A stretch of 63,732 nucleotides of DNA, the filler included, from Octopus bimaculoides (Eukaryota), in assembly GCF_001194135.2 (NCBI RefSeq). It is 4 parts of 4 records of this genome, joined end to end, with 100 filler letters (N's around TTAATTAATTAA, not from the genome) between each part and the next. Parts side by side here need not be neighbours in the genome. Positions count along the whole stretch, not along the records: positions 46,804 to 63,732 come from NC_068993.1; 3 more parts are not named here. One strand, given 5' to 3'. Numbering within the stretch: the stretch's first letter is position 1; the number at the start of each line of letters is the position of its first letter. Positions 8,995 to 63,732 of the stretch are shown one piece after another. A program made the position numbers and the translations under genes. The notes under the pieces were generated by a model that saw only the letters and a list, made by a program, of their open reading frames with translations, was not told where the DNA came from and did no database searches.

Positions 8995-9535
8995 TAGTAC
9001 CAGGCAGTGGCTCTCATGGCTTCTCATCTTAACTGATTGGAAGTGTTATCATGTACATGTTTTGTCTTGGTATAAAAGATGGACTACAGCAAATATTCTG
9101 CTCAATACCACAGATTTGTTTGTCAGTTGTTTGACCCTAACCAGTTGAGCATGTCCCTTGGTGGCTGATGATATGTGTATCCTTGGTCATGAGCAGAAGT
9201 ATAGGGGAGCATCATAGCCATATGTTGAGAGGAATTCTTTGGGGTTTGAATAATTCACCTCTGGAAACACGGGTGTTTCATTCATCATCCTTAAACAACC
9301 CTTATTCAGAGACTTTTTGAGTAGGATGAGCTGCTCAACCTGAAGAAAATTCTAACAGGACCCCCACCTGCGAGGTTATGCACTGTTTATCTTGATATGA
9401 CATCTCTATGTTACACACATATGGTTGTGATGCATGTGCCTGATGTACCCTTATCAGGCTTTGTATATTTGTACCCCAGTGTCACTTAGATGGCATGCGC
9501 TGCTCTCTCACTCAATAATGATAATAATAATAATA
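8995..9535 (+). mobile_element. LINE-like 3' end, family E, with an (AAT)n tail; truncated copies at 143-312, 525-780 and 785-970
   Basis: Shared GTACCCTTATCAG..CCCCAGxxTCACT..GATGGCAT..CTCTCTCACTCAATAATAAT terminus. Confidence 0.75.
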
Positions 9536-10524
9536 ATTTTCTTTCGTTGGCTACAAAAAAAAAAGAACCTTAGATGATGGTGGCAGTTACAGCAACATAT
9601 TACAAACACATTATGGAATCTATATCAAGTAAAGAGATATCAGCAATAACAATGAAAAACACTTATACAAAAATATAATAACAATAAATAACTGTGAGAA
9701 CAAAACATAAAATAACAAAGAGAAAAGTAACCTGAACTGGGTGAAGGGTACCACATAGGCCATTTGGGGGCATTCCATATAACACTGTGAAGGCACAAGA
9801 CCTTGTGATTAGGGCGTTGTTCTCACAATAACAAGACCATGGTTTCGCTTCATGGTTCAGGTGGTGTGTTGTGTTCTTGAGTGTTTTCTTAAATTGCCCC
9901 AGTCCACTCAGCTGTTACTGAGTAACCTAGCAACTAATTCTGGGAGAATGTTGTGATCTTGGTTTACTTATACGTCATGGAAACCAGGTTACCAACCCTA
10001 TGGATCCCAGGATTTGAGAGAGTTGAGTCCAGGTGTTGACCCTAATGGTGGCACGGTACCCAGGATTACACGAACCCACCAAAGAAAAGGAAATTTCTTT
10101 CAGTTCTTGTTGTTAGTCAGACTGCAATTACAAATTTAGACTAAGTCACAGATAGTAATTATTAATCCTTTCTACTATAGGCACGAGGCCGGAAATTTGG
10201 CGGGAGGAGTTAAATCGACAGTTGACAGTTTGACTGGGTACTGGCAAGCCAGTATGCTGCACCAGGCTCCAATCTGATCTGGCGATGTTTCTACAGCTTG
10301 AAGCCCTTCCTAACGCCAACCACTCCAAGAGTGTAGTGGGCGCTTTTTACATGTCACTGGCACAGGAGCCAGTCAAGTAGCACTGGCATCGCCCATGTTT
10401 GGATGATGCTTTTTACGTGCTACTAGCACAGGAGCCAGTTGGGGCGGGAGGGTTGGCATCGACCACATTCAGATGGTGTTTTGTATGAGCTACCGGCACA
10501 ATAATAATAGTAATAATAATAATA

Positions 10525-12843: not shown

Positions 12844-13554
12844 ATGTATATGTATGTGTGTGTGCATATATATGTGTGTGTGTGTGCGTGTGTATGTATA
12901 TATTTATATGATGTACCTATACACAATATATACATACATACATACAAGAATGTAATACACATGTGTATATACACATGTGTATATACACATACATTACATA
13001 CAAAGCACAATATCGAGAGAAATTTGGTAAATGGTCAGCAGCAACAACAACAACACCGAGAAGAAGAAGAAGAAGAAGAAGAAGAAGAAGAAGGAATAAA
13101 AAATGAGCTCGAAAGAGAAAGAAAGAGAGCGAACAAGAGAGAGAGAGCAAGAGATAAATTGAAGTGCTTTGAGATTGGTGTCTGAAGAAATGCCGGCAAT
13201 GTGTGAGGAAAAAGAAGCAATATGAAGAAATGGAAAAAAATATTAAGAAGAACAAGAACAAGAAGAATAAGAAGAACAAGAAGAGTAAGAAGTAGAAGTG
13301 TAAAATGAGTGCAGTTTGAAATTCAAAAAAAAAAATATATATATATATATTAGAAAATTAATATAAAATAAGGTGTAGAAAATTTGCAAAATTCTCCAAG
13401 TGTATATTGTAAAATTTTCCATGTGTGTGTATATATATATATATATATATAGACACATGTATGTATATATACATATATATACATATACATATATATATAC
13501 ACTTATATGTATATATACATATATATACATATACATATATATATACACTTATAT
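12330..13554. repeat. Compound (TA)n/(TG)n/(CA)n and (GAA)n low-complexity tract; similar tracts throughout segment B and at 6060-6400, 37950-38110 and 41380-41850
   Basis: Seen directly; source of most YIYIY/CVCVC/HTHT ORFs. Confidence 0.95.
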
Positions 13555-13654
13555 NNNNNNNNNNNNNNNNNNNNNNNNNNNNNNNNNNNNNNNNNNNNTT
13601 AATTAATTAANNNNNNNNNNNNNNNNNNNNNNNNNNNNNNNNNNNNNNNNNNNN
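13555..13654. other. Artificial scaffold spacer: 44N-TTAATTAATTAA-44N
   Basis: Exactly 100 nt; the 12-mer has stop codons in all six frames. Confidence 0.95.
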
Positions 13655-13687
<33 letters not shown>

Positions 13688-15931
13688 TGTATATGTATGT
13701 ATGCATGTATGTATATATGTATGTATGCATGTGTGTATGTATGCATGCATGTATGTATGTAGTGGATACTTCAAAAGGAATCCAGGCTTCATTAATCGCC
13801 TGATGATCGGAAACGAATAACTTTGTATACTGGGAAGAGGAACCTTTCGGCTATTATATCCACTGCCTGAATATATTTTGTAATATGAAATCAACGTTTG
13901 AAGAAATCCTTTACTTATGTTTTTTCTTAGTTTTGTTTTAATCCTTTGTGAACTACACCTACAAAAATGATTGTTTCAAGCTCACGCTTTTGATCTGATT
14001 TCTGGTTCTTGTGGTAACGTTGTTATAAAAATCTGAAACTACACTTTTAGAATATCAAAATTATTTTCTTCATAAGTTGACATTACTAATTAACTCAGTT
14101 ATAATTAGATTATTTGCCAATATATTAACTATGGAATACCTATAAACCCAAAACATATTACCAAAGAATAGTATGCCGTATTCATGAAAATTGCATACGG
14201 AATATTAATGATAAAAATGGCATTTCTGAGTTTAATGGAAGCCAATAGTACTCACTACGTAAAAGAAATGTATATGGATTCATAAACAGTCCTTTAAATG
14301 TTGGAAAAGTGTATGGTATTCTCTTTTATATAATATAAACCACGTGATGTCTGCTAGATTCAGGTCTCTAGTTACCTGGCTATAGTAGCATATTTAGTTG
14401 ATTGTTATCAAATAAGATAGTGGTGGCTTTAGCAGAGTGGTGGTAACCTACGAAATCAAGCAGGAAAATAAATCTTGAATCGTCAAAACCTGGTCAGCTG
14501 ACGCTTATACACAATGACCCAAATTGTCTTGATCAGAACAGAAAGCTGTGTTGGTTGTTACCCTTACAAACATCTGCAAAGCCACTCAAACCCTCACTAA
14601 GAACATGAAAGTGATGCTGAGTTACAAATAGCTTCTCCAGTCTGGCCCCGAACCCCGCACGTGGAAGCTCTGGTTATTATCGTTTCCACCGATAAAATAT
14701 GTCATCTACAATTATAAAATATTTCTGATTCTATTTCTTTATTTGGTTTTCCCTGTTAAAGCATCTATCTAAAGTATGGATACGTATCGACTTGGGCTGA
14801 GCAAGTACATACCGTGGGTTACGAACCTAATTCCTGTGCAAATACTATTTTTCAATGCGATAGAGAAATTTCAACGAGTAAACAATGTTTCTGCTCGGAT
14901 ATCAGCATATATCTATTTCTTAGCAATCGAAATCTTTGATGATGGCTTCAACTTTAAGCTAACGCTAAACTTCTAACTTAGCGATGTCCAAATGCTACTT
15001 CTAGAAATTACACTCACTATCACCTAAGATTCGGAACGCTCTTACCCAATGGTATATGACTTTGATCTACAGATAACTTTTAAAATGTAGTTCAGTGATC
15101 CAATGTTTAAGAAAGTAAACCAAAAATACGTGCTAAACTTTATTGGTTAACTAGAATAAAGAATATAGATAATGTCGAAGTGTTCACGCAACTTATATTT
15201 AGTAGAAAGGCGTCTATAATCGGTTCATCCAAAACTATCGTCCGCTTCTGATTTTAAGATGCCATGCGTATTTTCTATGGTGTACACAATATACAACTCC
15301 TCCGACACCACGTCTGAAATCATGAAGTATAAATTGATTCATTTATTATCACGAGAGGAGAATCTTCACATATTGTGTTTCTGAAGAGACAGAAAATACT
15401 GCTGGATTCAACATCATTGAACATTAAGCATATCATGTGATACAGTATCCGTTTCTCTGGTAAATTAAATTATTATTCATGTAAATTTAGGTGTATTGTA
15501 TTACAACAGACTGATATTACGTATTTGGAATTTAGTTTCGACTACATTTACTCACACACATACACGCGCAGACTCCGTGCCTGTACAAGCTAGCGAGTTC
15601 TAACTCCATTCACATGGATACTATAACGAAAATCCGGAGTGGCTTGTTCTGTTGCCTCGTGCCGCATCGGAAATACTGGTAATGTGCATCGCTTGTAATC
15701 AAAACGCGAATAATATATTCATACCTATCTATATATATGTCTAGCTATATATTTATCTATCAGTCTATATGTATAAATATTAAATATATATATAAATATT
15801 GTCTATTTCTTTCAATCATTAGAATCCAGCCATGTTGCAAGGCCAACTTAAAAAATTATAACAAACACATGCCCACGGTGAACCCGGAACAATGTTAGGA
15901 GACAAACTTGTTATCACACAGCCACACACAT

Positions 15932-46803: not shown

Positions 46804-46984
46804 TAAAATAAAAATATAAACAGTGACAAGCAAACAAGAAAAACAAATAGCAAATTTGCTATTTAATTCTTTAAAATATAAGAATATTTTCTAGTATTCC
46901 AAGCTTAAGAATTAATTGTCGATTTTTATTGAATAGAATATAATAGGAAGTTTTAACAATAAAAATGGTTTGTCTGTTCTTGTT

Positions 46985-47101
46985 TCAAACAGTATCCATA
47001 GGAGTGGAGGGAGGATGGTGGTGATGTTGCTGGTGATTGTGGTTGGCGGAGGAGGGAATTTTGGTTAATAAGCAGAAGGAGGAGAGTTCAGTTCTCTGAG
47101 G
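46985..47101 (-). CDS. Candidate terminal exon: PQRTELSSFCLLTKIPSSANHNHQQHHHHPPSTPMDTV*
   Basis: TATTTTAG acceptor, 38 codons, TGA, then AATAAA at 46930-46925. Confidence 0.3.
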   Translation of the reverse strand, partial: PQRTELSSFCLLTKIPSSANHNHQQHHHHPPSTPMDTV

Positions 47102-48097
47102 CTAAAATAGTGGAATATTGATTTCTTGGAATTAAGCACCAGCAGCATAAAAATAATAAAAACAACAAAGAAAAAATCAAATGAAAATATTAAATATCTT
47201 GAAATTAACGAAGAAGAATGAAGAATGAAACTGCAAAATATTCTTGTTTGTCTATAGAGCTTATATTAGTTTCACATTTTGACACAAGGCCTGTAATTTC
47301 TGGAGTGGGGGTACTGGTGCTCAACTGATACTTATTTCATTGATCCCAAAAGGATGAATGGTAAAGTTGACCTCAGCAGGATTTGAACTCAGGACATAAA
47401 GAGGGAGAAAATGCTGCTAAGCATTTTGCCTGTCATGCTAATGATTCTGCCAAGTGGCTGCTTTATATATAAAGCTTGAATTAATGGTGTTGCATTGAGA
47501 GGACTTTGCTTTAGTTGTGGTCATTGCTGTTTAGGTTAGTCCACATTATATCTGTTAGAAGCCTACGGTCGATTTCCTGGTTGCTCAGGTGAATGCATCC
47601 CAGCTTGGACGGGATGCCAATCTGTCACATGATTTCCTCATTTACATGACACCAGCACCTGTAAGCCCTCAAGAGAAAAACCTCTCATCTGAGAGAGGAA
47701 CATTGAGGACATGTCTGTATGCATGGATGGCCAGTTTTACTTAGCTTGATGTGTCATTTCATGCACAGCGAACCATCAGAAGTCTCAGTCCTTTATCATC
47801 TCCTTTATGAGGCCGAATGCCATCTATGTATCATACATTTAGTATAATACAGGGATGGCAAGCACTGGTGACCCTGCTGGTGGGAGTGCCATGAATAAAA
47901 GCACAGAGGACACTCTGTAAAGTGTATGGCATTAGGAAGTTTATCCAGCCATAGAAAACATGTCATATCAGGTAACTGAGGTTGGTATAGCCCTCCAGTT
48001 TGCCAGCATGGAAAGCAAATGTTAAATGATGATGATGATTTCTATTCTATTTATTATGATTATTTAAGTGTTTTATTTTGTTTTGTTTTTTTTACAG

Positions 48098-48315
48098 GAA
48101 GTATCACAGTGTTCAAGTTTAACAAAGTCGTGGAAGTAAAGGACATCACATCAGAACATTATTGCCACCCCTATATTTTCTTTTATACCTTTTGGTACCT
48201 CATAGTCTTGTATGGAATTGTGGGTAGTATACTAGTCATAGGTATATGTGGCATTTGCATAAAAAACACATATACTTATGCCATAGCAACAACATCTGTT
48301 ACTGAAGTGGTTTAA
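48098..48315 (+). CDS. Terminal exon of a TMEM272-like membrane protein: (G)SITVFKFNKVVEVKDITSEHYCHPYIFFYTFWYLIVLYGIVGSILVIGICGICIKNTYTYAIATTSVTEVV*
   Basis: Strong acceptor (TTTTGTTTTTTTTACAG), phase 1, TAA at 48313-15. YC-x5-F-x2-FW followed by a TM helix and Cys residues resembles the TMEM272 family C-terminus (from memory). No upstream exons were found on + in segment D. Confidence 0.6.
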
Positions 48316-49652
48316 TCTGCTAATCCACAAGATATATCAATTCTTAACACATCTACAAGGTGTCTCGTTTTAGGGGCAGATTACAGTGATTTAAGATTAA
48401 CCCCAGCTACCTAATAGGTGCTTAAGTTTTCACAGTGAAAGCACTTGGCTTTGTGGTTAGAGTACTTGGCTCACATTCATAAGGTCATGAGTTCAATTCC
48501 CAGCAACGTGTCATGTCCTTGAGCAAGACACTTCATTTCATGGTACTCCAGTCCACTCAGCTGACAAAAAGGAGTTATACCTGTCACTCAAAGGATGAAA
48601 CCTTGTTACATCCTCAGGGTCATACTGAATCTCCTGAGAATTACTTGAAGGGTATGTGTGTCCATGGAGTACTCAGCCACTTGCTTGCTAATTTCTTGAG
48701 CAGGCTGTTCAGATTAACTGGAACACTTGTCATCATAGCCAGCAGAACAAAAAGCAGATTTTATCAAAACACATTATGTCCCAAGCTTGAGCAATTTTGC
48801 CAATCCACTGCCCTTGTTCATTTTGTTAAATCAAAATGTCTGTTGTGGATGATCTGTTGGATTATCATCTTATGAGGGTTTTAGCTTCAAATTTGCTTCA
48901 GACATTTGTGTATTTGGGCAAGAGTACATTGGATTCTTTTTTTTTTTTTTTTTTTTTTGTAATGGCTTCCTTAAAGCACAGAAGTAAGCACAGAAGTAAG
49001 CATTTGTGATCTGTTTTTAGAGTGAAAGGCTAATTCTACCTCATAAAAAACAACCAAAAGCAGTGACTTGGCAGTCATTAGAATGTTGGACAGAATGCCT
49101 TGCAGAGTTTATTCTGAATCTATGTGCTCTGAGTTCAAATCCTACTGAGTCCAACTTTGCTTTACCTCTTTTCAGGAGTTGAGGAAAAAGCACCAATCCA
49201 GAGGATTGTATTAGAAGACATATTAATTAGACAGTAGAGTGAGATACTCCGCAGCATCTGCTCAAATTCTTTTGCATTTTGGCAGCAATACCTTTTGCTA
49301 AGCTGTATGAGCCCAAGTTCGTGGCCATTTGCTTTGATAAACACCTGAGGTGTGGAATGAGGAGACTTGCATGCATGGCCAAATGCCAGTCTTCTGCAAA
49401 ACAATCTTAGCCAGATTTGTATATACACAGGCAGGTGTACGGTCAACACTGACAAACATAGAAGCTAAAAGAATAGAAATGGTCTCTCCAACAGGCTTCC
49501 ACACAGTTTCTATCTATCAAATTTTATTTACAAGACTTTGTTAACCTATGACTGTGCTTGAAGACACCTTTTCAAAAGTGTCACACAGTGGCATCAGATC
49601 TGAGAATATAGAGTTGCAAAATAAACTAGGTTATGCAACAATAATGGCACTC

Positions 49653-49895
49653 CAGCCATGTCTGGACCCCTAAATTATACAGCTACTCTTGTGCCGTTTA
49701 ACTATAAAGTCATGCCTGTGTGATTAAACCACAGTCATTATGCTTCTTACCCATACAATTATGCCTGTACCCATAAACCACATGGCTGTACTTGTATCTT
49801 TAAATCTTATAACCTTGCCTGTGGCCCCTTAACTACAGAGCCTCTGCCCCTAAATCACACATGGTCATGACTGTAACACAAAACCACACAGCTTT
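49653..49895 (+). repeat. Degenerate minisatellite, about 27-bp unit, about 9 copies
   Basis: Recurring CAGYCATGCCTGTxCCCxTAAAxYA frame. Confidence 0.6.
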
Positions 49896-49937
49896 TACAT
49901 CAGTTCAGTTATCAGGTGTGAGGAATTCCATTTGGTA

Positions 49938-50159
49938 GTATAAGTTTCAAATGTTGGCACAAGACCAGCAATTTTTAGGGGAGGTGTAAGCCAATTACAT
50001 GAACCCCAGTTTTCAACTGGTACCTATTTTATTGACCCCCACAAAAAGATGAAAGGCAAACTCGACCTCAGCAGAATTTGAACTCAGACCATAAAGATGG
50101 ATGAAATGCCACAAAGAATTTTGCCTGGTATGCTAACAATTCTGCCAGCTCATCACTTT
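49938..50159 (-). mobile_element. SINE family B with a 13-bp target-site duplication
   Basis: Flanked by ATTCCATTTGGTA at 49925-37 and 50160-72. Confidence 0.85.
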
Positions 50160-50188
50160 ATTCCATTTGGTAATATTACCTGAGACTG

Positions 50189-50406
50189 CACACCAGGTAA
50201 AACGTTTACATTCTCAGTTCAAATTCTGCTGAGGTCAACTTTATGTTCTAGGTTCAAATTCCACCAAAGTCAACTTTGCCTTTCATCTTTTCAGGATTGG
50301 TAAAGTAAGTGCCAGTTGAGCACTAGGGTCAATGCAATCGACTTACCCACACCTTGTGAAATTGCTAGCCCTTTCTCTAAATCTGGAACCAAATTTGAAA
50401 CCAATG
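50189..50406 (+). mobile_element. SINE family B with a 13-bp target-site duplication
   Basis: Flanked by TTACCTGAGACTG at 50176-88 and 50407-19. Confidence 0.8.
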
Positions 50407-50559
50407 TTACCTGAGACTGACTGGTACCTGATCTATGGAAAGCTTTTGTTTGTTACCTGTCTAATTCTACAGGGTAGCTGAGCCAGGCCTGTGCATTTAA
50501 ATTCATTTAAGGCATTTACACACTCACTCACCTCCCCAGTCAGACATTCATTCATTCAG

Positions 50560-50905
50560 AGGGAAGTGCTGCCCTCCAGCAATTTATTGAAAGTTAGATG
50601 AGAGTGGCAAGGATGGTCTGAGTGATTGGACCTGCTCTGAGCATGCATCTATAGACTGAGGGGTGAGAATGAAGAGAGGCCACTTGCTTTAGTGGTCAAG
50701 GTTTCCATGAGCAGCCTTTGGAAGTCTCCCCACTTTGGGGGAATCATTCTTTACTAAAATTTTCTTGTTACCTCATTTTTTACTGCTGTAAATTTGTGTA
50801 AATGTATGAATTCCTTTCTGTGGTTTTTTCCCTGCTTTTCTATCGATGTCTTTTGTAATTTTTTATATAGGCCCTAGGGCCAATAAAGAAATGGCTATTA
50901 TTTAT
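50560..50905 (+). mobile_element. L1/Tx1-like LINE 3' end
   Basis: Decayed ORF end ...VIGPALSMHL*, a T-rich UTR and terminus GGCCAATAAAGAAAT. The same terminus (TGTGGCCAATAAAACGAATT plus (ATT)n) occurs at 32598-32640. Confidence 0.6.
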
Positions 50906-51229
50906 TTTGTAAAATATTCAAGACAGTCAATAAAATATTTTTGTTATCAAGAATGCTTTCATTGTTAATATATATGAATATTTTTAATATTTCCACAAAG
51001 CTCTACAATATTCGTAAAAGAAAGGTGTAGTCAATAATGTCAACCTTAACATATTACTGGTACCTGCTACTTATTTTATCAACCAGAGGTGGAAAGGAAA
51101 GTTAACTACAACAGGATTCTGGCACAGAACACAGAGATTTAAATACACACTAGAAAAATCTGATTCTACCATTTTGGCTACCCAACTGCATTTATTCTAC
51201 TGCAACTATCAAATACCATTAGTATTTAA

Positions 51230-51612
51230 GTTGGCAGTAAGGCGATGGGCTGACAGAACCGATAGCATGCAAGGCAAAATAATTCACAACATTTTATCTA
51301 TATTCATGTTCTGCATTCAAATTCCCATTTCTTTATTTATTTATTCTGCATTCAAATTCCACCGAGGTTGACTTTGCTATTTAAGTCAGCAGTAAAGCAG
51401 CAAGCTGACAGAATTGTTAGCAAGCCAAAGTAAAATGCTTGGCGGAATTTCGTCCGTCTTTATGTTCAGTGCTCAAACTTCACTAAGGTTGACTTTGTTT
51501 TTCATCCTTTGGGGGTCGATAAAATAAATACCAGTTGAGCACCGAGGTCGATGTAATCAACTTTCCGCCTTCCTCAAAATTGCTGGCCTTGTGCTGAAAT
51601 TTGAGACCAATA
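51230..51612 (+). mobile_element. Two SINE family B copies
   Basis: GCTGxCAGAAxxGxTAGCA head and CAAATTCC..GGTTGACTTTG repeated. Confidence 0.75.
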
Positions 51613-51915
51613 TTTCTTTTGATTATAAAAACACGTGTATGTAAAAATTGATTTCAAGGAAACTGGTACTAATGTGCTATTTGGCACCAGGGAAACCGTT
51701 ATCGAACAAGCAGGCTTATTCCAGAGCTTTGACCATCCCATCATTTTTAGGAAGAAGTATAATTACACTATCCTTTGTATCCTATTCTTACATATGTGTG
51801 TGTGTGTGTAAGATAAGGCATAAATAAGGAACTTTACCTAGTCCTTTATTCGTGCAATTATGACATTACAGCTGTTTCTGGTAAGCCCTATAGGTGCGTT
51901 CATAGTTCTGCTTAC

Positions 51916-51935
51916 TCGATCGGTCCATTGAGCGA
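51916..51935 (-). other. Candidate 20-nt exon (alternative acceptor gives 51916-51954)
   Basis: TTTTTTTCAG acceptor and GTAAGC donor; contains ATG GAC CGA TCG. Confidence 0.3.
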
Positions 51936-52201
51936 CTGAAAAAAATTGGACGACCTTAAAAAAAATATTGCTATCTTGGTCAGAGTTTGTGTTTCGAATG
52001 AGAAATTAGACGGAAACAAGGCCAATATAATACAAGTATGGGAAGGGGACGAAGAGAGAGGAGAAAAAGAAGATAAATGGAAGAAAAGAAAAAGAAAAGA
52101 AAACAAAAGGAAATAGAAAGGAGAGACACAAGAAGGAAGGTGAAAGTAGAGAGAGAGAGAGAGAAAGAGGTGAAATCCAGAAATCCTTTCTCAGACCTTA
52201 C

Positions 52202-52239
52202 CTAAGATTACGTGTTGTTCTTTTATCATTTGAAAACAT
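52202..52239 (-). other. Candidate first or 5' exon end (MFSNDKRTTRNL)
   Basis: AG|GTAAGG donor at 52201; ATG at 52239. Confidence 0.25.
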
Positions 52240-53245
52240 TTTGTTAGCCTGGTGTATTTGTATTAACAGAGATATTATGAAGTATTTTCTCCCGAAATCA
52301 CAATCCCATATATATATATATATACACACACACACATTTATCCAGGAGTAATGATACCCTGCTGATTCTGTTACTTCAACGATACCAAACTTGAAACTCA
52401 TAATTGGGAAGACAGATATAACTAGAAAAAAAAAACTGAAAGGTTGCAAAGACATTAAATTATCAGCTGAACGGGGGTAAAAAAAAAATGTTAATTTATA
52501 CCTATTTGTTCCTATCTTGTCTCAAAACACATAACTTTTGAATGATCGAAGGCAAAATAATATTCAATAATAGCTAATGCAGCGCCTTATCCAACACATG
52601 TTGAACATGCAGTATTTATGATTCGTTGCCTTCAAAGTATAGATTGCTGGAGTTTAAAATTCGAAAGAGATATTTATCTTTTGAAAACTGTTATGAGAAA
52701 ACAGGTTGACATTGAAAATATGATAAAGGAAACCATTAAATGAAAATGGCATTCTCTTGAAAGATTGCAGAGGGTAAGGATTATAACAACGGTGCCAATA
52801 TGGCAACTAAGTACAATGGAGCACAAAGGATATTACTCAATAAAAATCTGATGATTATTTTCACACCATGAGGATGTCACAAAATGAATTTGCAAAACAT
52901 TCTCGCAACTTTTGAAAGTGTCTATAATATTTTTGTTATATCTACAAACAGAATCGTTAGCATGGTGAGCAAAATGCTTAGCGGCATTTCGTTCGTCTTT
53001 AAGTTCTGAGTAGCCCCAGTGCCGACTTTGCCTTCAGTGCCGACTTTGCCTTTCATTATTACCAATCAAATACGAGTACCTCGAGTGGGTCATTGAGCCA
53101 ATAATAGAAAAAACTTTCGTTGATCCTATTTCACTTCTTTACTTTTATTTGTCAATTGGTTAACCATTTCACCAATTTACTAATCGATTGTTTGATTAAC
53201 CGCTGGTTCATCTATCAATAAACTAAGTTTCTTAAAATCCTTTTG

Positions 53246-53320
53246 CCATTCGGCGGCAACGGCGGCGGCACCACTCCTCCTCCTCCTCCTAACTCTAGGA
53301 AATACGATGGCGGCTACCTG
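53246..53320. promoter_or_regulatory. GC-rich patch with a YY1-like ATGGCGGC (53307-14); candidate promoter
   Basis: CpG-rich (GGC)n/(CCT)n island in AT-rich DNA between divergent gene candidates. Confidence 0.3.
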
Positions 53321-54185
53321 ATCCAACAACACCTCTTATAAACTGCGAATTATCTGGGTATAAACATCATTTTTGTTGTTCGTAGTAACGATAACATTTA
53401 TTTTGTTAACGATAAAAATAGATATTTTTCTTTAAACAAAAAAAGAAAACTGAGCAGAATTTGTGTTTTTGATCGTAACATTTGTATAAAATCTGAATAA
53501 TATCAAATTAGCCCTGTCGTATGTTCTGAAATTTAGTCTGGCGCCAAAGGGTAGAAGTGAAACAACAGGAATCGTTACATTCAAGTTCCTTTTTAAGATG
53601 CGTACACGCATCATCCATTTTGTTCGACATTATTCTCGCTCCCGTTAACATGCACACCATGGTATTACAAGCAAGAGACACCACCGTTGATATTTAAAAT
53701 GGACAACATTGAAATGATCTTCAAAATTCTGCAGAAACTACCAGATTTTTAATTCGAAACTCAGCTGACAAATTCAAGCATACTGATAATGGTCTTGTTA
53801 ACCAAATAAAAATATGTGCCTGCTTCGTTTTTGCATCTGGTTTGCAAGATTCATTTTTGTGAATTCGTGAGTTGAAAAGGTTGTAAATAGAAACGAAAGA
53901 GCTTTGAAACTACTTACTGTTTAACGAAGTTAAAAAAACAATCGATTAGTTAGTTCGTTATCTAACCAATTGACTTAATAATAAAGGAGTGGAATTGAAC
54001 CAGTGCGTTTGTTAATCATATTGGTATAATGACACTTCCTAGACACAACAAAATATGTGCCTAGTTGTTTCTGATATTATATATTTCAAGCTATTTTATA
54101 AAATAAAATATTTATCAAGCTTTTTGTGTCAGGAGAAAAAACGTGGTACTGACGACGCTTTCCAAGGGTTCCAAAACTGAATGGA

Positions 54186-54193
54186 TGACGTCA
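54186..54193. promoter_or_regulatory. Full CRE palindrome TGACGTCA upstream of DHDH-like
   Basis: Exact motif, followed by a possible donor CAG|GTACGA at 54213. An acceptor TTTACAG at 56404-05 precedes the ATG. Confidence 0.3.
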
Positions 54194-54589
54194 TTCTCAG
54201 ACCAGGGACCAGGTACGAATGTTAGGAATAGTGTGGACCCTGCGAGAGATACCTAAGTTGGTTCAGGTAGCGGTGTTAAAAAACAGGGACAATCATCCCA
54301 ACGGATTTCTACACAGTTACTTCTACCAAATTTCACCCACAAGGTTTTGGACGATGCGAGGATATGTTAACAAAAACAAAATCACTTCTCTAAAGTACCA
54401 CGGTGTGGGTTCGAACCTAAGACCTAATATTTGGGAAACATATTATTCACACTACTACTAAGCCTAAAAAAAAAATTTTAAACGTAATCTTTAACAATGG
54501 AGATTAGTGATATTCAGACTGACACATGCCAGTCCTTACTAGTAGTGTGTGTGTGTGTGTGTTAATGCTTACAAGGAAAACGTTGAACA

Positions 54590-54900
54590 GGTTAGGCATG
54601 GGAGCATGCGGGATTGCAGCGCGTAGCTGCATCCACCATTTGTCGGTATCTACTTAGGTCGCCCTGTACAACCGTTTGAGCAATGTCCCAATCAGTTCTC
54701 ACCCCAGTGAAATACTTCCCCATCCACTGCAACAATGAGATCACGGCGGATGAGGAAGCTGAACTGTGACTTCAAAATTTCGGTTTACTCGCCTGATGAC
54801 GGTTAGCAACCCGAAACGTTGAAATCATTGTCAATCTTTTTCTTGTAAATATTAATAAATATGTACTCTCTAAAAAGTACAGAGTGTTCCTTCAATTTAT
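54590..54900 (+). mobile_element. Penelope-like element remnant with a hammerhead-like core
   Basis: CCTGATGA-CGGTTAGCAACCC-GAAACGTTG followed by a T-rich tract and AATAAA. Confidence 0.4.
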
Positions 54901-54904
54901 TATT

Positions 54905-55445
54905 CTTTCTACAAGAGGCACAAGGCCTGGAATTTGGGGAGGTGGGGGTTAGTCGATTACATGGACACTAGTATTTGACTGGTACATATTTTATCAACTC
55001 TTTCGAGGAATTCTAACTCAAAACGTAATTATTCGAAATAAATACGAGTACAAATTTCGCCCAACGTTCTAACGATTCTGCCGTCTCACAGCCCTAATCT
55101 TTCAATAGAATATTGGTTTCAAATTTTGGCACAAGCCCAGCAATTTCGAGGAAGTGGGTAAGATGATTACATCGACCCTAGAGCTTGACGGTACTCATTT
55201 TATCGACCCCAAAAAGAGTGACCCCTACCGCCAGAAACGTTTTAGCCCAAGGCCAGCAAGTTCGCGGAAGGGTTAAGTCGATTACATCGACCCCAGTACG
55301 CAACTGATACTTAATTTATCGACCCCGAAAGGGTGAAAGGCAAAGTCGACCTTGGCGGAATTTGAACCCAGAGCGCAAAGACGGACGAAATTCTGCTAAG
55401 CATTTTGCTCGGCATACTCGCCAACTCCTTCCAACTCGCCACCTT
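54905..55445 (-). mobile_element. Cluster of SINE family B copies
   Basis: Repeated ATCGACCCC..AGT..TGG/TACT core on the reverse strand. Confidence 0.75.
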
Positions 55446-56418
55446 ATCTTACAATTTAATATTAAATTGTTTGTATATATAACCTTATATAAAAAGAAAA
55501 CATATATATATATATATATATTTGTGTGTNNNNNNNNNNNNNNNNNNNNNNNNNNNNNNNNNNNNNNNNNNNNNNNNNNNNNNNNNNNNNNNNNNNNNNN
55601 NNNNNNNNNNNNNNNNNNNNNNNNNNNNNNNNNNNNNNNNNNNNNNNNNNNNNNNNNNNNNNNNNNNNNNNNNNNNNNNNNNNNNNNNNNNNNNNNNNNN
55701 NNNNNNNNNNNNNNNNNNNNNNNNNNNNNNNNNNNNNNNNNNNNNNNNNNNNNNNNNNNNNNNNNNNNNNNNNNNNNNNNNNNNNNNNNNNNNNNNNNNN
55801 NNNNNNNNNNNNNNNNNNNNNNNNNNNNNNNNNNNNNNNNNNNNNNNNNNNNNNNNNNNNNNNNNNNNNNNNNNNNNNNNNNNNNNNNNNNNNNNNNNNN
55901 NNNNNNNNNNNNNNNNNNNNNNNNNNNNNNNNNNNNNNNNNNNNNNNNNNNNNNNNNNNNNNNNNNNNNNNNNNNNNNNNNNNNNNNNNNNNNNNNNNNN
56001 NNNNNNNNNNNNNNNNNNNNNNNNNNNNNNNNNNGATCTCTATGACCAAAATACACACTACAAGATGTACCATCATTTCGGAAAAAATTATTAAATTCTT
56101 GCTTCGTTTTGTTTTTAATAAACAGTTTCGTTTTTATTTGAATGTTTAATAAATTTTTCTGTTTTTATTTTTTTTTTGGTTTTGTGCACGTTTTCTTTTT
56201 TCTCATTAATACCCCCTTTTTATTTGTTGTCTATATCATAGACTCGTCGATTCAATTCACACAATAAATCAATATAAACCCCTCAATAAACATCTGTCTA
56301 AATTTAATTTGTCGAGAAAAAGCGAAGGTCACCGAGTCTCTTGTGACATACTGGCTTAGGGTTCTTGCAGCCGCCATTTACGTTTTATTTTTAGTTCCTT
56401 TACAGTTAAAACTATACA

Positions 56419-56502
56419 ATGCATTGGGGAATATGTGGTACTGGATGTATAGCAGAAGATTTTTGCAAAGCTCTGAGCTGTATGGATCAGTCTCTACATG
56501 AA
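56419..56502 (+). CDS. DHDH: DHDH-like (trans-1,2-dihydrobenzene-1,2-diol dehydrogenase / Gfo-Idh-MocA family) coding exon 1: MHWGICGTGCIAEDFCKALSCMDQSLHE
   Basis: ATG at 56419 has an in-frame TAA upstream. The exon carries the Rossmann motif WGICGTGCIA (cf. WGIVSVGLIS in human DHDH, from memory). GTAAGA donor at 56503, phase 0. Confidence 0.9.
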
Positions 56503-56704
56503 GTAAGAACTTCGTTCCTCCTCTGGTTCTTGTTTTATGTTATGGTTTTAAGAATTTGTTGTTTTGTTTCAATATTTCTTCGTAAATTATTGCAGTCCTT
56601 GTTGTTGCTGTCTTTATCAAATATCCTCGAACTGAAAAAAAAAAATCCTTAACTTTACACGGATGGATATAGCATCTTTTTTTTTCTTTTTTTTTTTTTA
56701 TGCT

Positions 56705-57075
56705 TCACTTGTCTGAGTTAGTAGACTGCAGCCATGCTATTGCACCACCTTGAAGAATTTTACTCGAACGAATCGACCCAGAGCTTATTTTCATTTTAAA
56801 GCTTGGTGCTTATCCTATCGATCTCTTTTGCCGAACCGTTAAGTTACGAGAACGTAAACACACCAACACTTATCAAGCGGTGGTGGACACGCCTACATTA
56901 TATTATATATATAACACACACACACACACACACACACGGCTTCTTTCAGTTTCCGTCTACCAAATCTACTCACAAGGCTTTGGTCGACCCGAGGCTATAG
57001 TAGAAGACACTTGCCTAAGGTGCCACGCAGTAGGACTGAACCTGGAACCATGTGGTTGGGGAGCAAACTTATAAC
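56705..57075 (-). mobile_element. SINE family A in DHDH-like intron 1
   Basis: Reverse complement of the 33716 copy. Confidence 0.85.
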
Positions 57076-59099
57076 CATTTATAGACTTGAGTGGATGTAA
57101 GAGCTTAAAACTATTCTCCGCGAGTGTCTTATATTAAGGTGTTTGACCTAGCGGTTAGGTTGTTTGAATTCTGATTTTAAAGTCTTTTCAATTACGAATC
57201 GGGGTTGCGTCCTTAAACAAAATGTTTCAATTCATATTGCTTCAGTTCATTCTAGGATGAAAATGAGTACCAGCAACAATTGCTGGTAAACCCCACAATG
57301 GACTGGAGTTCCATTCAAGGCGATAGTGCTGTATTCGTTTTGACCCTTATACGCCATGGCAACCGAAATAAGCTCCGGTCTACAGAGCTTGTAGGCTCAT
57401 GACGAACCTAAGACTGCATGGTTTAGTCCCAGGTCAATCTTGATGATCAACTAATAAACTTTAGAACTTAACTGGGAATAGCCAACGTCGGTCGGCCCCA
57501 GCAAGATTTAAACTCTGAACGTAGGATGTGTGTAAATGCAGGCATCGTACGGTTTCCAACAAGATTCTATTCGAATTGTGACGGGAAGTTCCAAATGTGT
57601 AAGGAAGATATATGGTTAACTGAATTAGGTTTTGTATACGACAGGCACTTAATTTTAGCGCTCCTAGTTTTAGATTTTGCTCAGATAGAGCAAGACCTGT
57701 TGTCAAAAGCATTCGGTCCGTTAGCATCCTGCCGTTTTTATAAACACAAAAACTGTTTAATATACACTGTCATTTTTTTATGAGGGATGTGATGAGATTT
57801 GTTATATATAGCAAGTCTAGTGAATTGATAGTTTCTCATTGAATTATATAAAGGGTTCACTCAAATGTAGAGATGCATGGCTAAGTGGTCAGGATGTTGG
57901 ACTCCTAATCGTGAGATTATGGTTTCGATACCTGGACCGGGTGATGCGTTGAGTTCTTGAGCAAAACGCTTTATTTCGCGTTGTCCGGTCCACCCAGCTG
58001 GTAAAAAGGACTACCTGAAATGGACTGGCGTTCCATCCAAGGAGGAATATATACGCCAGAGAAACCAGGGAACCATCCCTATGCTTCTCGTGGATTAATG
58101 TGTAATAACCATGTTAAACTATAATTACGCCCCACTATTTCTCCGTTAGGAGTTCCAAAGTACCAACAAGCGCTTTTGATTATTTCCGGTTCACGAGGAT
58201 ATGAATGTCACAACCTCCTCCGTGGAAATCGTACCAGTTATAGGGTACCGAAGGGTTCCAAAAATTAGAAGGGTACGTTGACTACATGTCTCGCAGACAG
58301 TATGTTTTTAAAATATAAAAGATATTTGATATAATCACTGGCAGAATGTCTTTGATGATAGCTCTGTTCGACCAAGAGCGATTGCGGCTAAACTGCAAAT
58401 AATGGTGATATCTCCCTTCATTATTGTTGATTGATATTTCATTAACTACTTGACAGTATTTCATTATTGCCATTTTGAGTTTAAATCCTGATTTCGCCAA
58501 CTTCACAGATTATCTTTCTGGGATCGACAAAATACGACTGGGTGGGGTCACCATTTTGTTCTGTGTATTATATGAACATGTTAAAATAGCCATTACAGTT
58601 AAGTCCAGTTTGTATTTGATTTAAGTAGCTATTTGCTACGAGTTCTCTTTGTGCACAGGGAAATGAGTGTGGGTGTGGGTACTTGTATTCTGAAAAGTGA
58701 CCAGTGAAATGTGTCAAGCCATTCTTTTTGACCGTGTACAAAGAAAATAAATGTATTCGCGTCTAAAGTTCCATAAGATACTGCTTTAAAATCGTAGTTT
58801 TCAAGAAGCAAATTTTTTTTTCAAATAAAGTAAATTCATAACATTACACACTTTTTAATAAACGTGTACAATTTTTCAATGCGCAATTGTACAATTTTAA
58901 AATTCATGTGTATAAACCCAGAAATTGGTTGTCAGGCATAAGAGCTGTAAAGTTTCTTGTACACAGGAACATAAGCATTAGAATATAATCTTTGTGAGAA
59001 AGTTGAGGGATGAAAATGATCAAATACGAGTCTAGAAACGTGGAACTTCCAGCTACCATAAGAAAATATCCCAGCATTGTTGAACTTTTGGGTTTCTAT

Positions 59100-59710
59100 A
59101 AGCCCTTCATAAATTTAGTACCATTTGCATACTGGAATCGATCTAATCGACTAGTCCCCTCCCCCAAAATTTCGGGCCTTGTGTCTAGAGTAGAAAAGAA
59201 TCGTTAGCACGCCGGACAGAATACTAAGCGGCATTCCGTCCGTCTTTACGTCCTAAGTTCAAATTGCGCCGAGGTTGACTTTACCTTTCACCCTTTTCGG
59301 GTCGATGATATATGAAACAGTTGAACACTGGGGATGATATTATCAACTTGTACCCTCCCCAAAAGTTTTAGACTTTGTGTCTATTGTGGAAAACATTATT
59401 ATTAAGACTACGAACTGGCAGAATCGTTAGCGCGTTGGACAAATAGCTTAGCGGCTTTTTTTGTTTTTTTACTTGCTATTTACGTTCTGAGTTGAAATTC
59501 TGCTTTGGATGATTTTGCTTTTCATTCTTTTGGGATCGATAAAACAGGTATCAGTTGATGTAATCTATTATCCACCTCCTCCTAAAAATTCACGTCTTGA
59601 GATTATAGTAGGGAAAAATTCGCCGACGTCAACTTTGCCTTTTAAATTAAAGTACCAGTCAAGCACTGGAAATTAATGGAACTGACTTGCCTCCTCTCTT
59701 CAAAATTGCT
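59100..59710 (+). mobile_element. Head-to-tail SINE family B copies in DHDH-like intron 1
   Basis: A tail fused to the next head at AGAATCGTTAGC (about 59197); further head at about 59416. Confidence 0.75.
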
Positions 59711-60216
59711 TAACACATAAAGCGCGACAGGCCACGATCGTCACCGTCTGGCACAAGTCCATAGGCCACGATCCTGGCCCAGATAGATGCATTTAATTTA
59801 TGGGCGTTTGTCGGGGTCTGTCACGTAAACGCTCCGATACCCCACAGAATACAAGAGGACTAATAGTTCAATTAATGACTTTTCAGATGATGTAAAACTT
59901 GCCACCATTATATACTAAAGATATTTTAACTATTTTTTGTTTTTTATGTGTGCATTGTAGTCTCATTTTCATAAAATGTGCTCAGCAGTCCATGCTATGT
60001 GAATGCAAATCCTAGCGCTTTATGCATTGAATCTCTTTAGTCAAAATTATTACGTTCTACACGTCAGCAGTTTCGGCTTTACACCATAAACAATCGGGTT
60101 TGAATTTATCAGTATCATTAAGTGTCGGACAGACTTGCCTCAAAATTTGTGGATTTGTTCTACCTGAGACGTTTTCTATAAAATGCATTTATATTCATTT
60201 TTTTTTTTCCAACTAG

Positions 60217-60328
60217 ATCGTTGCTGTTGCTGGTGATGACAGCAATGATGCCAGTGACTTCGGCACGAAGTTTAATATACCAAATACTTACGGATGCTGT
60301 GAAGAATTTGTCAGAAATAAGAATATAG
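60217..60328 (+). CDS. DHDH: DHDH-like exon 2: IVAVAGDDSNDASDFGTKFNIPNTYGCCEEFVRNKNI(D)
   Basis: Poly-T tract with TAG acceptor at 60215-16; 112 nt, phase 0 to 1; GTAAAA donor at 60329. Matches VVAVAARD..FAQKHDIPKAYGSYEEL. Absent from the ORF track because it has no start codon. Confidence 0.9.
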
Positions 60329-60909
60329 GTAAAACGTCTTTTTATCATTAGACTGCGACCATGCTGAGGCACCACCTTGAATTTTTAGTNNNNNNNNNNN
60401 NNNNNNNNNNNNNNNNNNNNNNNNNNNNNNNNNNNNNNNNNNNNNNNNNNNNNNNNNNNNNNNNNNNNNNNNNNNNNNNNNNNNNNNNNNNNNNNNNNNN
60501 NNNNNNNNNNNNNNNNNNNNNNNNNNNNNNNNNNNNNNNNNNNNNNNNNNNNNNNNNNNNNNNNNNNNNNNNNNNNNNNNNNNNNNNNNNNNNNNNNNNN
60601 NNNNNNNNNNNNNNNNNNNNNNNNNNNNNNNNNNNNNNNNNNNNNNNNNNNNNNNNNNNNNNNNNNNNGGAACCAGGTGTTTGGGAAGCAAACTTCTTAC
60701 CACACACCCACCCTGCACCGCCACAGAGTCATCGAATTATCTTATATTTCCAAAAATCCATGGTGGATCTGGATATACTTTTTAAAGCACCAGAACGCCA
60801 CACAACATTAAGGTCACTGGACTGTAACAGCAGCAGCAGAAAAGATCGACGCAAGTAACTGGGGGGGGGTGCACGGTTTGGCGCGTAAATACTGAGAGGA
60901 TCAGTGTCT

Positions 60910-61250
60910 GTACTTATTTTTTACTTTGTCATTGGACTGCAGCCATGCTAGGGCACTGCCTTCAAGTACTTAAGTCTGGTATTATATTAAATTCTTTTGT
61001 CGAACCGCTAGGAAACGGGAACGGAAACAAACCAACACACTTGTCAAGTGATGGTATATGTATACACACATGCAACCCGTCGAGTGTGTGTGTGTAAGCT
61101 CACCACCCCTACACAAACCCGACAGGTTTCCACACAATCTCCGTCTATCAGATTCACTCACAAGGCATTAGCTGTCATGGGGCTTTAGAAGAATACACTT
61201 GCCCAAGTTGCCATGCAACGGAACTGAACCCGGAACCGTGTGGTTCATAA
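60910..61250 (-). mobile_element. SINE family A in DHDH-like intron 2
   Basis: Reverse complement of the family; a second, gap-interrupted copy lies at about 60345-60715. Confidence 0.75.
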
Positions 61251-61420
61251 TGAAGTGACTTTTTTTTTTTCATTTATCTATTTTATAGAAAATTTTCATA
61301 ACTATATCGCATGATCTCTCAAAAATAGTGTTCTAGCATTGATGTACATTGACAATGATATTTCATGTTAGACTTCATTCACAGGTGTACGTTATTCTTT
61401 TTCATTATTGTCTATTCCAG

Positions 61421-61584
61421 ATGTAGTGTATGTATCCTCTCAAGTCGGTGACCGTTACGAACATTGTTATCTCCTGATACAACATAAGAAACATGTTTTA
61501 TGCGAAGCTCCCTGCGCTTTGAGAGCAGAGGAATGTTTTTCGCTGCTAGATTTTGCAAGACGAAATAAAGTGTTTTTCATGGAG
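61421..61584 (+). CDS. DHDH: DHDH-like exon 3: (D)VVYVSSQVGDRYEHCYLLIQHKKHVLCEAPCALRAEECFSLLDFARRNKVFFME
   Basis: TTCCAG acceptor; 164 nt, phase 1 to 0; GAG|GTATTG donor. Carries the family motifs DVVYV, KHVLCExP and FFME. Confidence 0.93.
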
Positions 61585-61890
61585 GTATTGTATTTTTTTA
61601 ATGAAACTTGCTTATTTTGTTGTTTAACTCCAGGTCATCTCTGTTTGTGTGTATGAGAGAGAGGGGGGGGAGAATAAAAGTATTGCTGTAATCGTCTGAG
61701 ACACGTTTGATCTTTTCTCCGTTTTTTTTCTTTTCTCTCCTTGTCTATTCTTTCTGCCGAAGCGTTATCAGCGGGAGTATGAACGCTTGACTGAGCTGTC
61801 TTCAAATGAATGAACCCATTTGCAATTAACTTTTTAATTACTGGTATAGGGAGAGGCATAATTACCACTTCCTGTTAAGCTTCTTTCTGG

Positions 61891-62069
61891 AAAGTAAAGA
61901 CTAGTTGCCAACATAATGTGGCTGTCTTGGAAGGGACGATTGTTACTGTTTAGCACCAGGAAGCAGCGTTTCCAGCTGGCTTTATGACACAATATCTGTG
62001 GAGCTAAACAACAGTAGCAATTGTCCTTTCCAAGATAGCCACATTATGTTGGCAAACAGTCTTTACTTT
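61891..62069. mobile_element. MITE-like inverted repeat (64/67-bp arms, 48-bp spacer) in DHDH-like intron 3
   Basis: AAAGTAAAGACT..GCCAACATAATGTGGCT..TTTAGC and its reverse complement. Confidence 0.8.
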
Positions 62070-62282
62070 AAAGAACTTACTGAATATCTCGCTTTAGAGA
62101 TTTAGAAATGTTTTTTTTACCCTGGTTACACGCAAAATAGGAAAACAAAACTTCCTTCACATAGATGTGCGGGAATGCTTCTGCTTGTGTGTGTGTGTTT
62201 ACATGCGTGTTTCTAGTGGGGAGGTACTTATTTACAGTTGACTCTATGAGCACGTTAACTGGATTTATTCTCTTTTCATCAG

Positions 62283-62532
62283 GGCATGTGGATGTGTTTC
62301 CTGCCGATTTTTAGACACATTAAAGAGGAAATTGATTATGGTACCATAGGGGATGTAAAATATCTCGATGCAGCTCTATTTTTCGACGTTCTACATAAGG
62401 ATAAGAAATCCACCACAGGAATAAGCGGAGGCAGTATTTCCAATATAGGCGTGTATCTTTTGTGGTTGGTACATTTTATATTCCGAGAGAATCCTGAACG
62501 CGTCATCACTATTGGAGATTTTACATGTAACG
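62283..62532 (+). CDS. DHDH: DHDH-like exon 4: GMWMCFLP...GTIGDVKY...GGSISNIGVY...GDFTCN(G)
   Basis: TTTTCATCAG acceptor; 250 nt, phase 0 to 1; GTAAAT donor. Matches AIWTRFFP..GTLGDLR..GGALLDIGIY. Confidence 0.93.
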
Positions 62533-63654
62533 GTAAATATATTCTCTCCCCCCCCCCACACACACACAGCAAAATAAAATTCGAGATGAGATTACAGAAT
62601 TATATAATCTCACAAATTACATAATGTGTACACGTGTTTCACCAGCTAGAACTAGTCATTTATGCAGTAATCGTTGTATAATCAGTTTTTATAAAGCCAG
62701 ATCATCAGAAGTAAATTGAGTAATGTAACCCATTGTTGGTTACCACCGTCAGTTGGTGTTAGATACAAGTAGACTGTCTCGCAAACTTTGGACCCCTATC
62801 CGTAGAATTATTCTACAACTAGTTCAATTATGATTTCTACAGTCAAAGTGGACGTAACTCTAATTTTCTTATCCCCCACCCCCGTTTTTATTCACCCTTC
62901 CACTTCAGTTTTTTCTTGTGGTTTCTCATGTACGAGAGCATTGGTTTTCAAATAGAACGGACCATGTGCTCAGAGCCTGGAGATTGCTCGAAGACACGGC
63001 GCGTTTTAAAAACCTGTATGTCCATATGTATTCATAGCAAGAAACTATTAGCTCTTCAACGTGACATCAAATGACCAGGTTCTCTGCCCCAAAGTCTCTC
63101 ATATTCTTAGTTCCACTCTCACTTCCTTCCTACAGCTTTTGTCCTTTCAATTTATTACATCTATCAACAACATTGTGACAAACTAAGATATTGAAACGAT
63201 CCTCTTTTGACAGTTATCTTCTGATGAAAAGCATTCCAATCTTAAAAAACCGCGTCCTTCTATTGGACTACATCATCCAATGCGTCCCACTTATGAAGAA
63301 CGTGTTGCCATTTGCGGTAGATTCGGCTGCGGAATCTAGCAATTAAATAGCACTCAGTCGGTTACAACGACTAGGGTCTTAGCTGATATGATCAACGGAA
63401 CAGCTAAGTTACGAGGACAATAAACACACTAACACCAACTGTCAAGCGGTGGTGGGGACACACGCACACAAACATATGTGACCAGCTTCTTCCAGTTTCC
63501 ATCTACCAAATCCACTCACAAGTGTGTGTGTGAGAGAGAGAAATAAAGAAATGCTATTTCTGCTGGCAGTAAGACAAACTAGATCTTGCTTTATCTCCTT
63601 TTTTATACTACAGAAAACACTAACGTAAATTAATTTTTATTCTATTGACCTTAG

Positions 63655-63732
63655 GTATTGATGAAGCATGTAACGTTATCCTTGTGTATCAGAATGGTAA
63701 CAAAGCTTCTTTGTCATGTCATTCAAAATTGA
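63655..63732 (+). CDS. DHDH: DHDH-like exon 5, cut by the window end: (G)IDEACNVILVYQNGNKASLSCHSKL
   Basis: CCTTAG acceptor at 63653-54; phase 1 joins exon 4. Matches [23 protein letters not shown]. The frame is open to the window end. Confidence 0.88.
   Translation, partial: VLMKHVTLSLCIRMVTKLLCHVIQN

Follow-up and report, generated by a model that had tools for sequence, protein, structure and literature searches.

Can a gene keep an open frame, intact splice sites and the fold of an enzyme family, and yet encode a protein that is no longer an enzyme? This question is raised by a locus in Octopus bimaculoides, found in a window of 63,732 nucleotides (the whole stretch of DNA analysed, four genomic parts joined end to end). 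On the + strand of the part at 46804-63732 (NC_068993.1), five open exons joined at AG/GT boundaries encode a frame of 229 codons that resembles dihydrodiol dehydrogenase (DHDH) and reaches the edge of the part. [quoted passage not shown] At the positions of His79, Lys97 and Asp176 of DHDH the paralogue carries Arg, Ala and Asn, and it is therefore referred to here as the R/A/N gene. On balance, the most likely reading is that it encodes a protein of the DHDH fold that has lost the classical NADP-linked reaction but that may still hold a dinucleotide or another ligand.

The gene model is sound as far as it can be followed in the window. The exons measure 84, 112, 164, 250 and at least 78 nt, with phases 0/1/0/1, and a direct check of the splice sites bears out the five exons, open frame and clean phases described in an earlier, sequence-only reading of this DNA. 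The 229 codons are free of stops, and an in-frame TAA (56407-56409) lies upstream of the ATG at 56419. The orthologous gene of O. sinensis has seven exons, and the window copy is thus read only into part of exon 5, with exons 6-7 lying outside the window. The best match of the fragment among solved structures is the monkey dimeric DHDH, 2o48 (E=2.6e-34), and Pfam finds both the Rossmann domain (PF01408, E=1.9e-19) and the C-terminal domain (PF22725/PF02894, E=2.2e-11) above their gathering scores; the orthologues have the same two domains. Alignment to 2o48 confirms the constant two-residue offset of the earlier numbering up to about residue 188, after which a single one-residue gap makes the claim of a gapless alignment slightly too strong. 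The placements of Arg77, Ala95, Cys125 and Asn174 in the window, and of their codons, are exact, and the residues that had been described as retained are indeed found: Trp125 (Trp123 in the window), Tyr180 (Tyr178) and the glycine fingerprint GxGxxG/A, which reads G7-T-G-C-I-A12 in the window and G-V-G-A-N-A in Argonauta. DHDH numbering is used below unless window residues are named.

How unusual the substitutions are becomes apparent from two comparison sets of 106 aligned relatives and of 261 relatives, both excluding the R/A/N clade. His79 is present in all of them (106/106 and 261/261) and is Arg in the R/A/N clade, and Lys97 is present in 106/106 and 257/261 and is Ala in the clade, giving EAP for the family motif EKP. 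Glu96 (106/106; 261/261) and Tyr180 (106/106; 256/261) are retained by the clade, Tyr180 in all four of its sequences. Asp176, Asn in the R/A/N clade, is found in 94/106 and 224/261 relatives (~86-89%), and Arg127, which is Cys in Octopus and Pro in Argonauta, in 92/106. The sequence-only reading had built its case on four substitutions, and these are not of equal weight. Every canonical octopod copy already has Asn in place of Arg127, and Asp176 varies among cephalopod copies that keep Lys97, being Tyr in cuttlefish and Cys or Glu in some octopus copies. The tyrosine in cuttlefish DHDH makes Asp176 an unreliable marker of activity in cephalopods, and since canonical relatives vary at both Arg127 and Asp176, the case rests on His79 and Lys97, which are near-invariant elsewhere. 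A further change had escaped the earlier reading: 97/106 relatives have a basic residue, Arg or Lys, at position 37, which is Asp in the Octopus and Gly in the Argonauta members of the clade. In proteins of this fold a basic residue at this position serves the 2'-phosphate of NADP. More broadly, of 51 family-conserved positions, 8-10 are lost in the Octopus R/A/N proteins and 21 in that of Argonauta, as compared with four in the canonical Argonauta copy.

Several relatives have features of their own. The two DHDH proteins of the cuttlefish Acanthosepion pharaonis (P0167, P0168) both have Tyr at the Asp176 position, with His79, Lys97 and Tyr180 kept. Four anonymous environmental DHDH-like proteins among the 261 (P0058, P0062, P0115 and P0123, from Logan/ENA/JGI) have Leu, Asn, Val or Ser in place of Lys97 and retain His79. 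One of them stands for a marine (TARA) cluster with 13 members. The lysine is therefore rarely, but not uniquely, lost in this clade, and the four may, going by this residue, be further independent pseudoenzyme lineages. A 1316-aa model from Poecilia latipinna (XP_014911139.1, P0007) consists of four fused tandem DHDH units, some with EKS for EKP, and is probably a merged tandem array.

The substitutions are not peculiar to one assembly. The O. sinensis orthologue (XP_029643826.1, 353 aa) is 86% identical to the window protein, that of O. vulgaris (CAI9731947.1) falls within the O. sinensis sequence cluster, and that of Argonauta hians (GAB1601661.1, 354 aa) is 44-45% identical to the Octopus orthologues. 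The 354-aa Argonauta protein came from a full HMMER scan of 1.8 billion representatives, together with a 329-aa protein encoded on the same Argonauta hians contig. The O. sinensis, O. vulgaris and 354-aa Argonauta orthologues all have Arg, Ala and Asn at the His79, Lys97 and Asp176 positions, encoded by CGT, by GCT or GCC, and by AAT, and all are full-length open reading frames with no stops. The R/A/N residues are therefore not sequencing errors and are older than the split between Argonauta and Octopus, and the possibility left by the earlier reading, that orthologues would have kept EKP and Asp, does not apply to these three species. A-to-I editing cannot restore His79 or Lys97, as neither CGT nor GCT contains an A; in principle, only Asn174 (AAT) could be edited. 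RefSeq names the orthologues "DHDH-like", with no remark on the missing residues, and literature searches on octopus DHDH and on the accession numbers returned no paper on the orthologues of the window gene.

The earlier reading had asked whether octopods have a separate canonical copy. They do. A profile search recovered DHDH-like proteins of 329 aa from O. bimaculoides, O. sinensis, O. vulgaris and Argonauta that have both His79 and Lys97, as well as DHDH from the cuttlefish Acanthosepion. The canonical copies lie in tandem, at 44.12-44.16 Mb of CM046613.1 in O. bimaculoides (L002) and at 64.53-64.58 Mb of OX597826.1 in O. vulgaris (L003), and the O. vulgaris R/A/N gene is found on the latter chromosome at 54.14 Mb, about 10 Mb from the canonical array. 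The first five exon lengths, 84/112/164/250/125, are identical in R/A/N and canonical genes, which indicates that they are paralogues that arose by gene duplication and rules out an origin as a retrocopy. In a neighbour-joining tree the four R/A/N sequences form one clade with 100% bootstrap and a long stem, and they are 40-43% identical to the octopod canonical copies as opposed to 31-32% to cuttlefish DHDH. These identities argue for a duplication of DHDH on the octopod side as the origin of the R/A/N gene, a duplication that predates the split between Argonauta and Octopus.

The canonical array is itself variable at the active site, with Cys or Glu for Asp176 and Thr or Ala for Pro98 among its members, and one O. 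vulgaris array model is a fusion whose second half has both Lys97Gln and Tyr180Asn. For the canonical pair of O. bimaculoides X1 and O. vulgaris X1, omega (dN/dS) is ~0.2, which is a rough yardstick only, as the dS of 0.37-0.44 is too high for strict orthologues in a tandem array when compared with the species-level value of 0.145. The high dS suggests turnover of paralogues, or conversion, within the array.

Has the R/A/N gene been maintained by selection? Between the window and O. sinensis, dN is 0.063 and dS 0.145-0.148, so that omega is ~0.43 by four methods, with a bootstrap interval of 0.24-0.85 and 1.2% of replicates reaching 1; the value near 1 that the earlier reading had named as a refutation is not what is observed. 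The dS of 0.145 agrees with an intron divergence of ~12%, and the exons are 92.4% identical whereas the introns are ~86-89% identical. When the 52 observed differences are placed at random, 37.7 +/- 2.9 codons change, as compared with 32 observed (P=0.039), and neutral simulation at the observed divergence produces a stop codon in 88% of replicates. Over the longer range, Argonauta and Octopus share 44-45% identity in their R/A/N proteins and 68-71% in the canonical copies, which corresponds, in Kimura protein distances and not in ages, to a clock ~2.5-fold faster for the R/A/N protein; its frames of 353/354 codons are nevertheless still open, that of Argonauta despite about one amino-acid substitution per site. 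The R/A/N gene is thus under real but relaxed constraint.

The fold, as predicted, has come through this accelerated evolution. Modelled by AlphaFold2 from a 108-sequence alignment, the O. sinensis orthologue has a mean pLDDT of 92 and a pTM of 0.89, with low confidence only at the loop 160-170 and in the last 20 residues. [quoted passage not shown] The structure prediction that the earlier reading had proposed as a check thus models an intact DHDH fold for the R/A/N protein.

What such a fold could still do depends on the roles of the residues that were lost and kept. Asada and colleagues are said to have found in 2000 that, in the monkey enzyme, Tyr180Phe leaves hardly any activity and His79Gln chiefly impairs the binding of NADP(H). 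Compared with a competent DHDH (EC 1.3.1.20 / 1.1.1.179), the R/A/N protein falls short at His79, which serves coenzyme binding and chemistry, at Lys97, at Asp176 and at position 37, and agrees at the acid/base residue Tyr180. The glutamate of the EKP motif binds the nicotinamide carboxamide (PMC11612644), and the lysine serves as proton donor in KijD10 (cited in PMC11167396). The residues lost lead us to infer a loss of catalytic activity, and the R/A/N protein would be a pseudoenzyme in the operational sense: conserved catalytic residues are absent, an active-type paralogue is present and the sequence bears the mark of purifying selection. In the mechanism proposed, the protein would be non-catalytic or strongly impaired, and the glycine loop, Glu96, Trp125 and Tyr180 would leave a pocket into which a dinucleotide or a small ligand could bind.

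A second property of the R/A/N proteins may bear on where they work. The orthologues extend ~25 aa beyond the end of canonical DHDH and finish with ...FFEKMRCTII in Octopus and ...FFDRIGCTLL in Argonauta, such that CTII (O. sinensis and O. vulgaris) or CTLL (Argonauta) stands at the very C-terminus. The extension shares an exon with the last conserved helix and is therefore independent of splice prediction, and among 263 full-length homologues none of the other 260 has a Cys at -4 followed by aliphatic residues. By motif rules, which for CaaX ask for a Cys at -4, two aliphatic-type residues and L/I/M/S/Q/A in last place, this end fits a CaaX-type box and equally a class I PDZ ligand (Thr-x-hydrophobic-COOH). 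In CaaX boxes, geranylgeranylation is favoured when the final residue is Leu or Ile. The window gene is cut before its C-terminus, and the CaaX-like end is attributed to O. bimaculoides from its orthologues. The tail suggests that the protein may work tethered to a membrane or scaffold: the Cys-Thr-aliphatic-aliphatic extension, as seen in the orthologues only, would provide the tether through prenylation or PDZ binding, and the tethered protein could act as a sensor, an adaptor or a partner of the active paralogues. The most specific form of this proposal, a lipid-anchored (geranylgeranylated) DHDH-fold pseudoenzyme that binds without turnover and serves as a membrane redox or metabolite sensor or as a regulator of the active DHDH array, is unlikely.

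Several observations weigh against a non-catalytic R/A/N protein of octopod origin with a tethering tail. The attachment of the R/A/N clade to the octopod canonical copies has a bootstrap of only 47%. The short-range selection signal is modest (P ~0.04, from 52 differences), and the CaaX interpretation draws on two lineages and on motif rules. Database searches that did return the canonical O. bimaculoides proteins returned no full-length O. bimaculoides protein of the window type, and intactness is seen in the orthologues only. Tyr180, Glu96 and GxGxxA are all conserved, leaving room for dinucleotide binding, altered chemistry, or another cofactor or substrate, and the charge lost with Lys97 could be supplied by Arg77.

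The last two points lead to the idea that the R/A/N protein is a still-active oxidoreductase with a remodelled site, in which Tyr180 acts as the acid/base, Arg77 compensates for Lys97, the loss of Arg37 shifts the preference from NADP to NAD, and a new substrate is turned over, possibly at the membrane. This is the main rival and is possible, though less likely. The set of conserved residues is consistent with it, as it includes Tyr178, Glu94, Pro96, G-x-G-x-x-A and, in Octopus, Trp123. Biliverdin reductase, of a related fold, works without the EKP lysine. R77, A95 and N174 are identical in Octopus and Argonauta at only 44% overall identity, as an altered working pocket would show, but three identical sites are not significant alone against a background of 44% (~0.09). 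The octopod DHDH family is expanded and its Asp176 is variable even where Lys97 is kept, suggesting substrate diversification. Against these points, His79 and Lys97 are kept in 257-261 of the 261 relatives, and wherever its role has been studied the EKP lysine acts as proton donor. Moreover, the Argonauta protein lacks Trp125 and 21/51 family-conserved positions, which looks like a relaxed pocket, and there is the 2.5-fold faster clock of the R/A/N protein relative to the canonical copies.

A loss confined to O. bimaculoides, whose copy would be recently decaying or unexpressed with the five open exons as a remnant, is improbable. The absence of a full-length database protein of the R/A/N type, where canonical ones were returned, would fit with this, as would a dN/dS that at 0.43 is high and the position of exons 6-7 outside the window. 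The only exact database match to the window protein is a 228-aa fragment model, but this model ends merely at the edge of the part. None of the five exons has a stop or a damaged splice site, even though 88% of neutral simulations gain a stop, the exons are better conserved than the introns, and three further octopods have an intact orthologue. Recruitment as a bulk structural protein, e.g. a lens crystallin like the cephalopod S- and omega-crystallins, as the earlier reading had suggested, is very improbable and found no support, for it draws on a general crystallin precedent and on a conserved fold with lost catalytic residues, whereas the gene is single-copy, unlike the expanded S-crystallins, and the conserved CaaX-/PDZ-like end of the orthologues points to a tethered protein and not to a highly soluble bulk one.

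Among known systems, the mammalian DHDH/D-xylose 1-dehydrogenase (PDB 2o48, 2poq, 3ohs) is the best sequence match (E=1.6e-45 for the orthologue, besides the value given above for the fragment) and the best structural match, with the same two-domain architecture. The octopod protein shares with it Tyr180, Trp125, Glu96 and the glycine loop, and differs from it by His79 to Arg, Lys97 to Ala, Asp176 to Asn, Arg127 to Cys and Arg37 to Asp, at ~29-33% identity, and by the C-terminal extension of its orthologues. Its closest relatives are the canonical octopod DHDHs (O. bimaculoides isoform X1, P0163; O. sinensis P0160/P0162; Argonauta GAB1601625.1), encoded on the same chromosome, which unlike the R/A/N protein have His79, Lys97 and a basic position 37, occur in a tandem array, and end ~25 residues earlier with no Cys-aliphatic end.

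Pseudoenzymes are known in most enzyme families. In Gfo/Idh/MocA the only cases described are the vertebrate proteins GFOD1/2, which are defined by lost cofactor binding (PMC11612644) and are described as the sole cofactor-deficient members. GFOD1/2 resemble the R/A/N protein in being animal proteins of this fold that lack the canonical EKP (DRT in GFOD1) and in their proposed non-catalytic, protein-binding role. The R/A/N protein is not their orthologue, as it is nested within DHDH, and its gene is octopod-specific whereas GFODs are vertebrate-wide. Furthermore, GFOD1 is a pseudoenzyme for its inability to bind NAD(P), whereas the octopod protein keeps the glycine fingerprint and the nicotinamide-binding Glu, and cofactor binding may survive. 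The K102A form of KijD10 (PDB 3rc9) has Ala at the same EKP-lysine position, but there the change was made in the laboratory, in a sugar 3-ketoreductase from a bacterium, whereas the octopod change from Lys to Ala is natural, fixed and accompanied by His79Arg. The octopod clade would thus be an independent, DHDH-derived case of a Gfo/Idh/MocA pseudoenzyme beside the vertebrate GFODs, combining the natural loss of His79 and Lys97 with a retained cofactor fingerprint and, in the orthologues, a newly gained C-terminal targeting motif. With the expanded, variable DHDH array accompanying it in the same genomes, it offers a tractable enzyme/pseudoenzyme pair for the question of repurposing in cephalopods, although the practical stakes are modest, as this is one lineage-specific paralogue.

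Coordinates of the R/A/N gene and of the gap upstream of it, in positions of the whole window
Feature	Position	Strand	Remarks
Second assembly gap	55530-56034		385 nt upstream of the ATG; corresponds to 9198-9607 of O. sinensis locus L001; covers the promoter/5'UTR region
Exon 1	56419-56502	+	ATG and codons 1-28; fingerprint G7-T-G-C-I-A12 at 56437-56454; 84 nt in O. sinensis too
Intron 1	56503-60216	+	GT...AG; many dispersed repeats; colinear with intron 1 of O. sinensis L001, ~88% identity
Exon 2	60217-60328	+	Codons 29-65 and 1 nt; length of 112 nt shared with O. sinensis and the canonical paralogue
Intron 2	60329-61420	+	Houses the assembly gap 60390-60668
Exon 3	61421-61584	+	Codons 66-120; Arg77 (CGT, 61453-61455) and Glu94-Ala95-Pro96 (61504-61512), with Ala95 as GCT at 61507-61509
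Exon 4	62283-62532	+	Codons 121-203 and 1 nt; Trp123, Cys125 (TGT, 62295-62297), Asn174 (AAT, 62442-62444), Tyr178 (TAT, 62454-62456)
Exon 5, first 78 nt	63655-63732	+	Ends at the part edge; full exon 125 nt in O. sinensis

In exon 2, the end of beta2 reads AVAGDD, with Asp35 standing at the position of DHDH Arg37. The part contains two runs of N, the one listed upstream of the gene and a second, at 60390-60668, that interrupts it: exon 2 with its GT donor ends 61 nt before this gap, and exon 3 with its AG acceptor starts 752 nt after it. Across these introns the window is colinear with L001 at 85-89% identity, and so are the flanks of the gap, 59109-60389 on the left corresponding to 13138-14420 and 60669-61064 on the right to 14667-15053, such that 279 N replace ~246 nt of intron 2, which in O. 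sinensis is a dispersed repeat. O. sinensis likewise has an exon 2 of 112 nt and an exon 3 of 164 nt and nothing exonic between them, and the junction in the window, NKNI|D|VVYV, shows no loss of a residue. The colinear flanks and equal exon lengths indicate that no exon is lost in the gap and that the frame across it is sound.

The locus is rich in repeats. A dispersed, SINE-like repeat of 100-200 nt is present at 47317-47471, 49945-50160, 50239-50345, 51394-51563, 55270-55445 and 59197-59349 of the window, and dozens of its copies, 70-89% identical, are found in L001. A second family, flanked by CA/TG microsatellites, is present at 56723-57077, 61111-61261 and 63406-63522, and at 14381-14700 of L001. 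This O. sinensis copy occupies the stretch equivalent to the gap at 60390-60668, which it probably explains.

No second DHDH-like match is found in the part, or within 10 kb on either side of the gene in O. sinensis, which rules out a tandem duplicate beside the gene. Further upstream, at 47980-48315 on the + strand, a stop-terminated open frame encodes a hydrophobic peptide resembling a transmembrane segment, with no Pfam match, and is probably the last coding exon of a neighbouring gene. Its conserved core (48097-48279) is 57% identical to 7521-7703 of L004, just upstream of the Argonauta orthologue, and the presence of this block upstream of the gene in both places is microsynteny that supports orthology.

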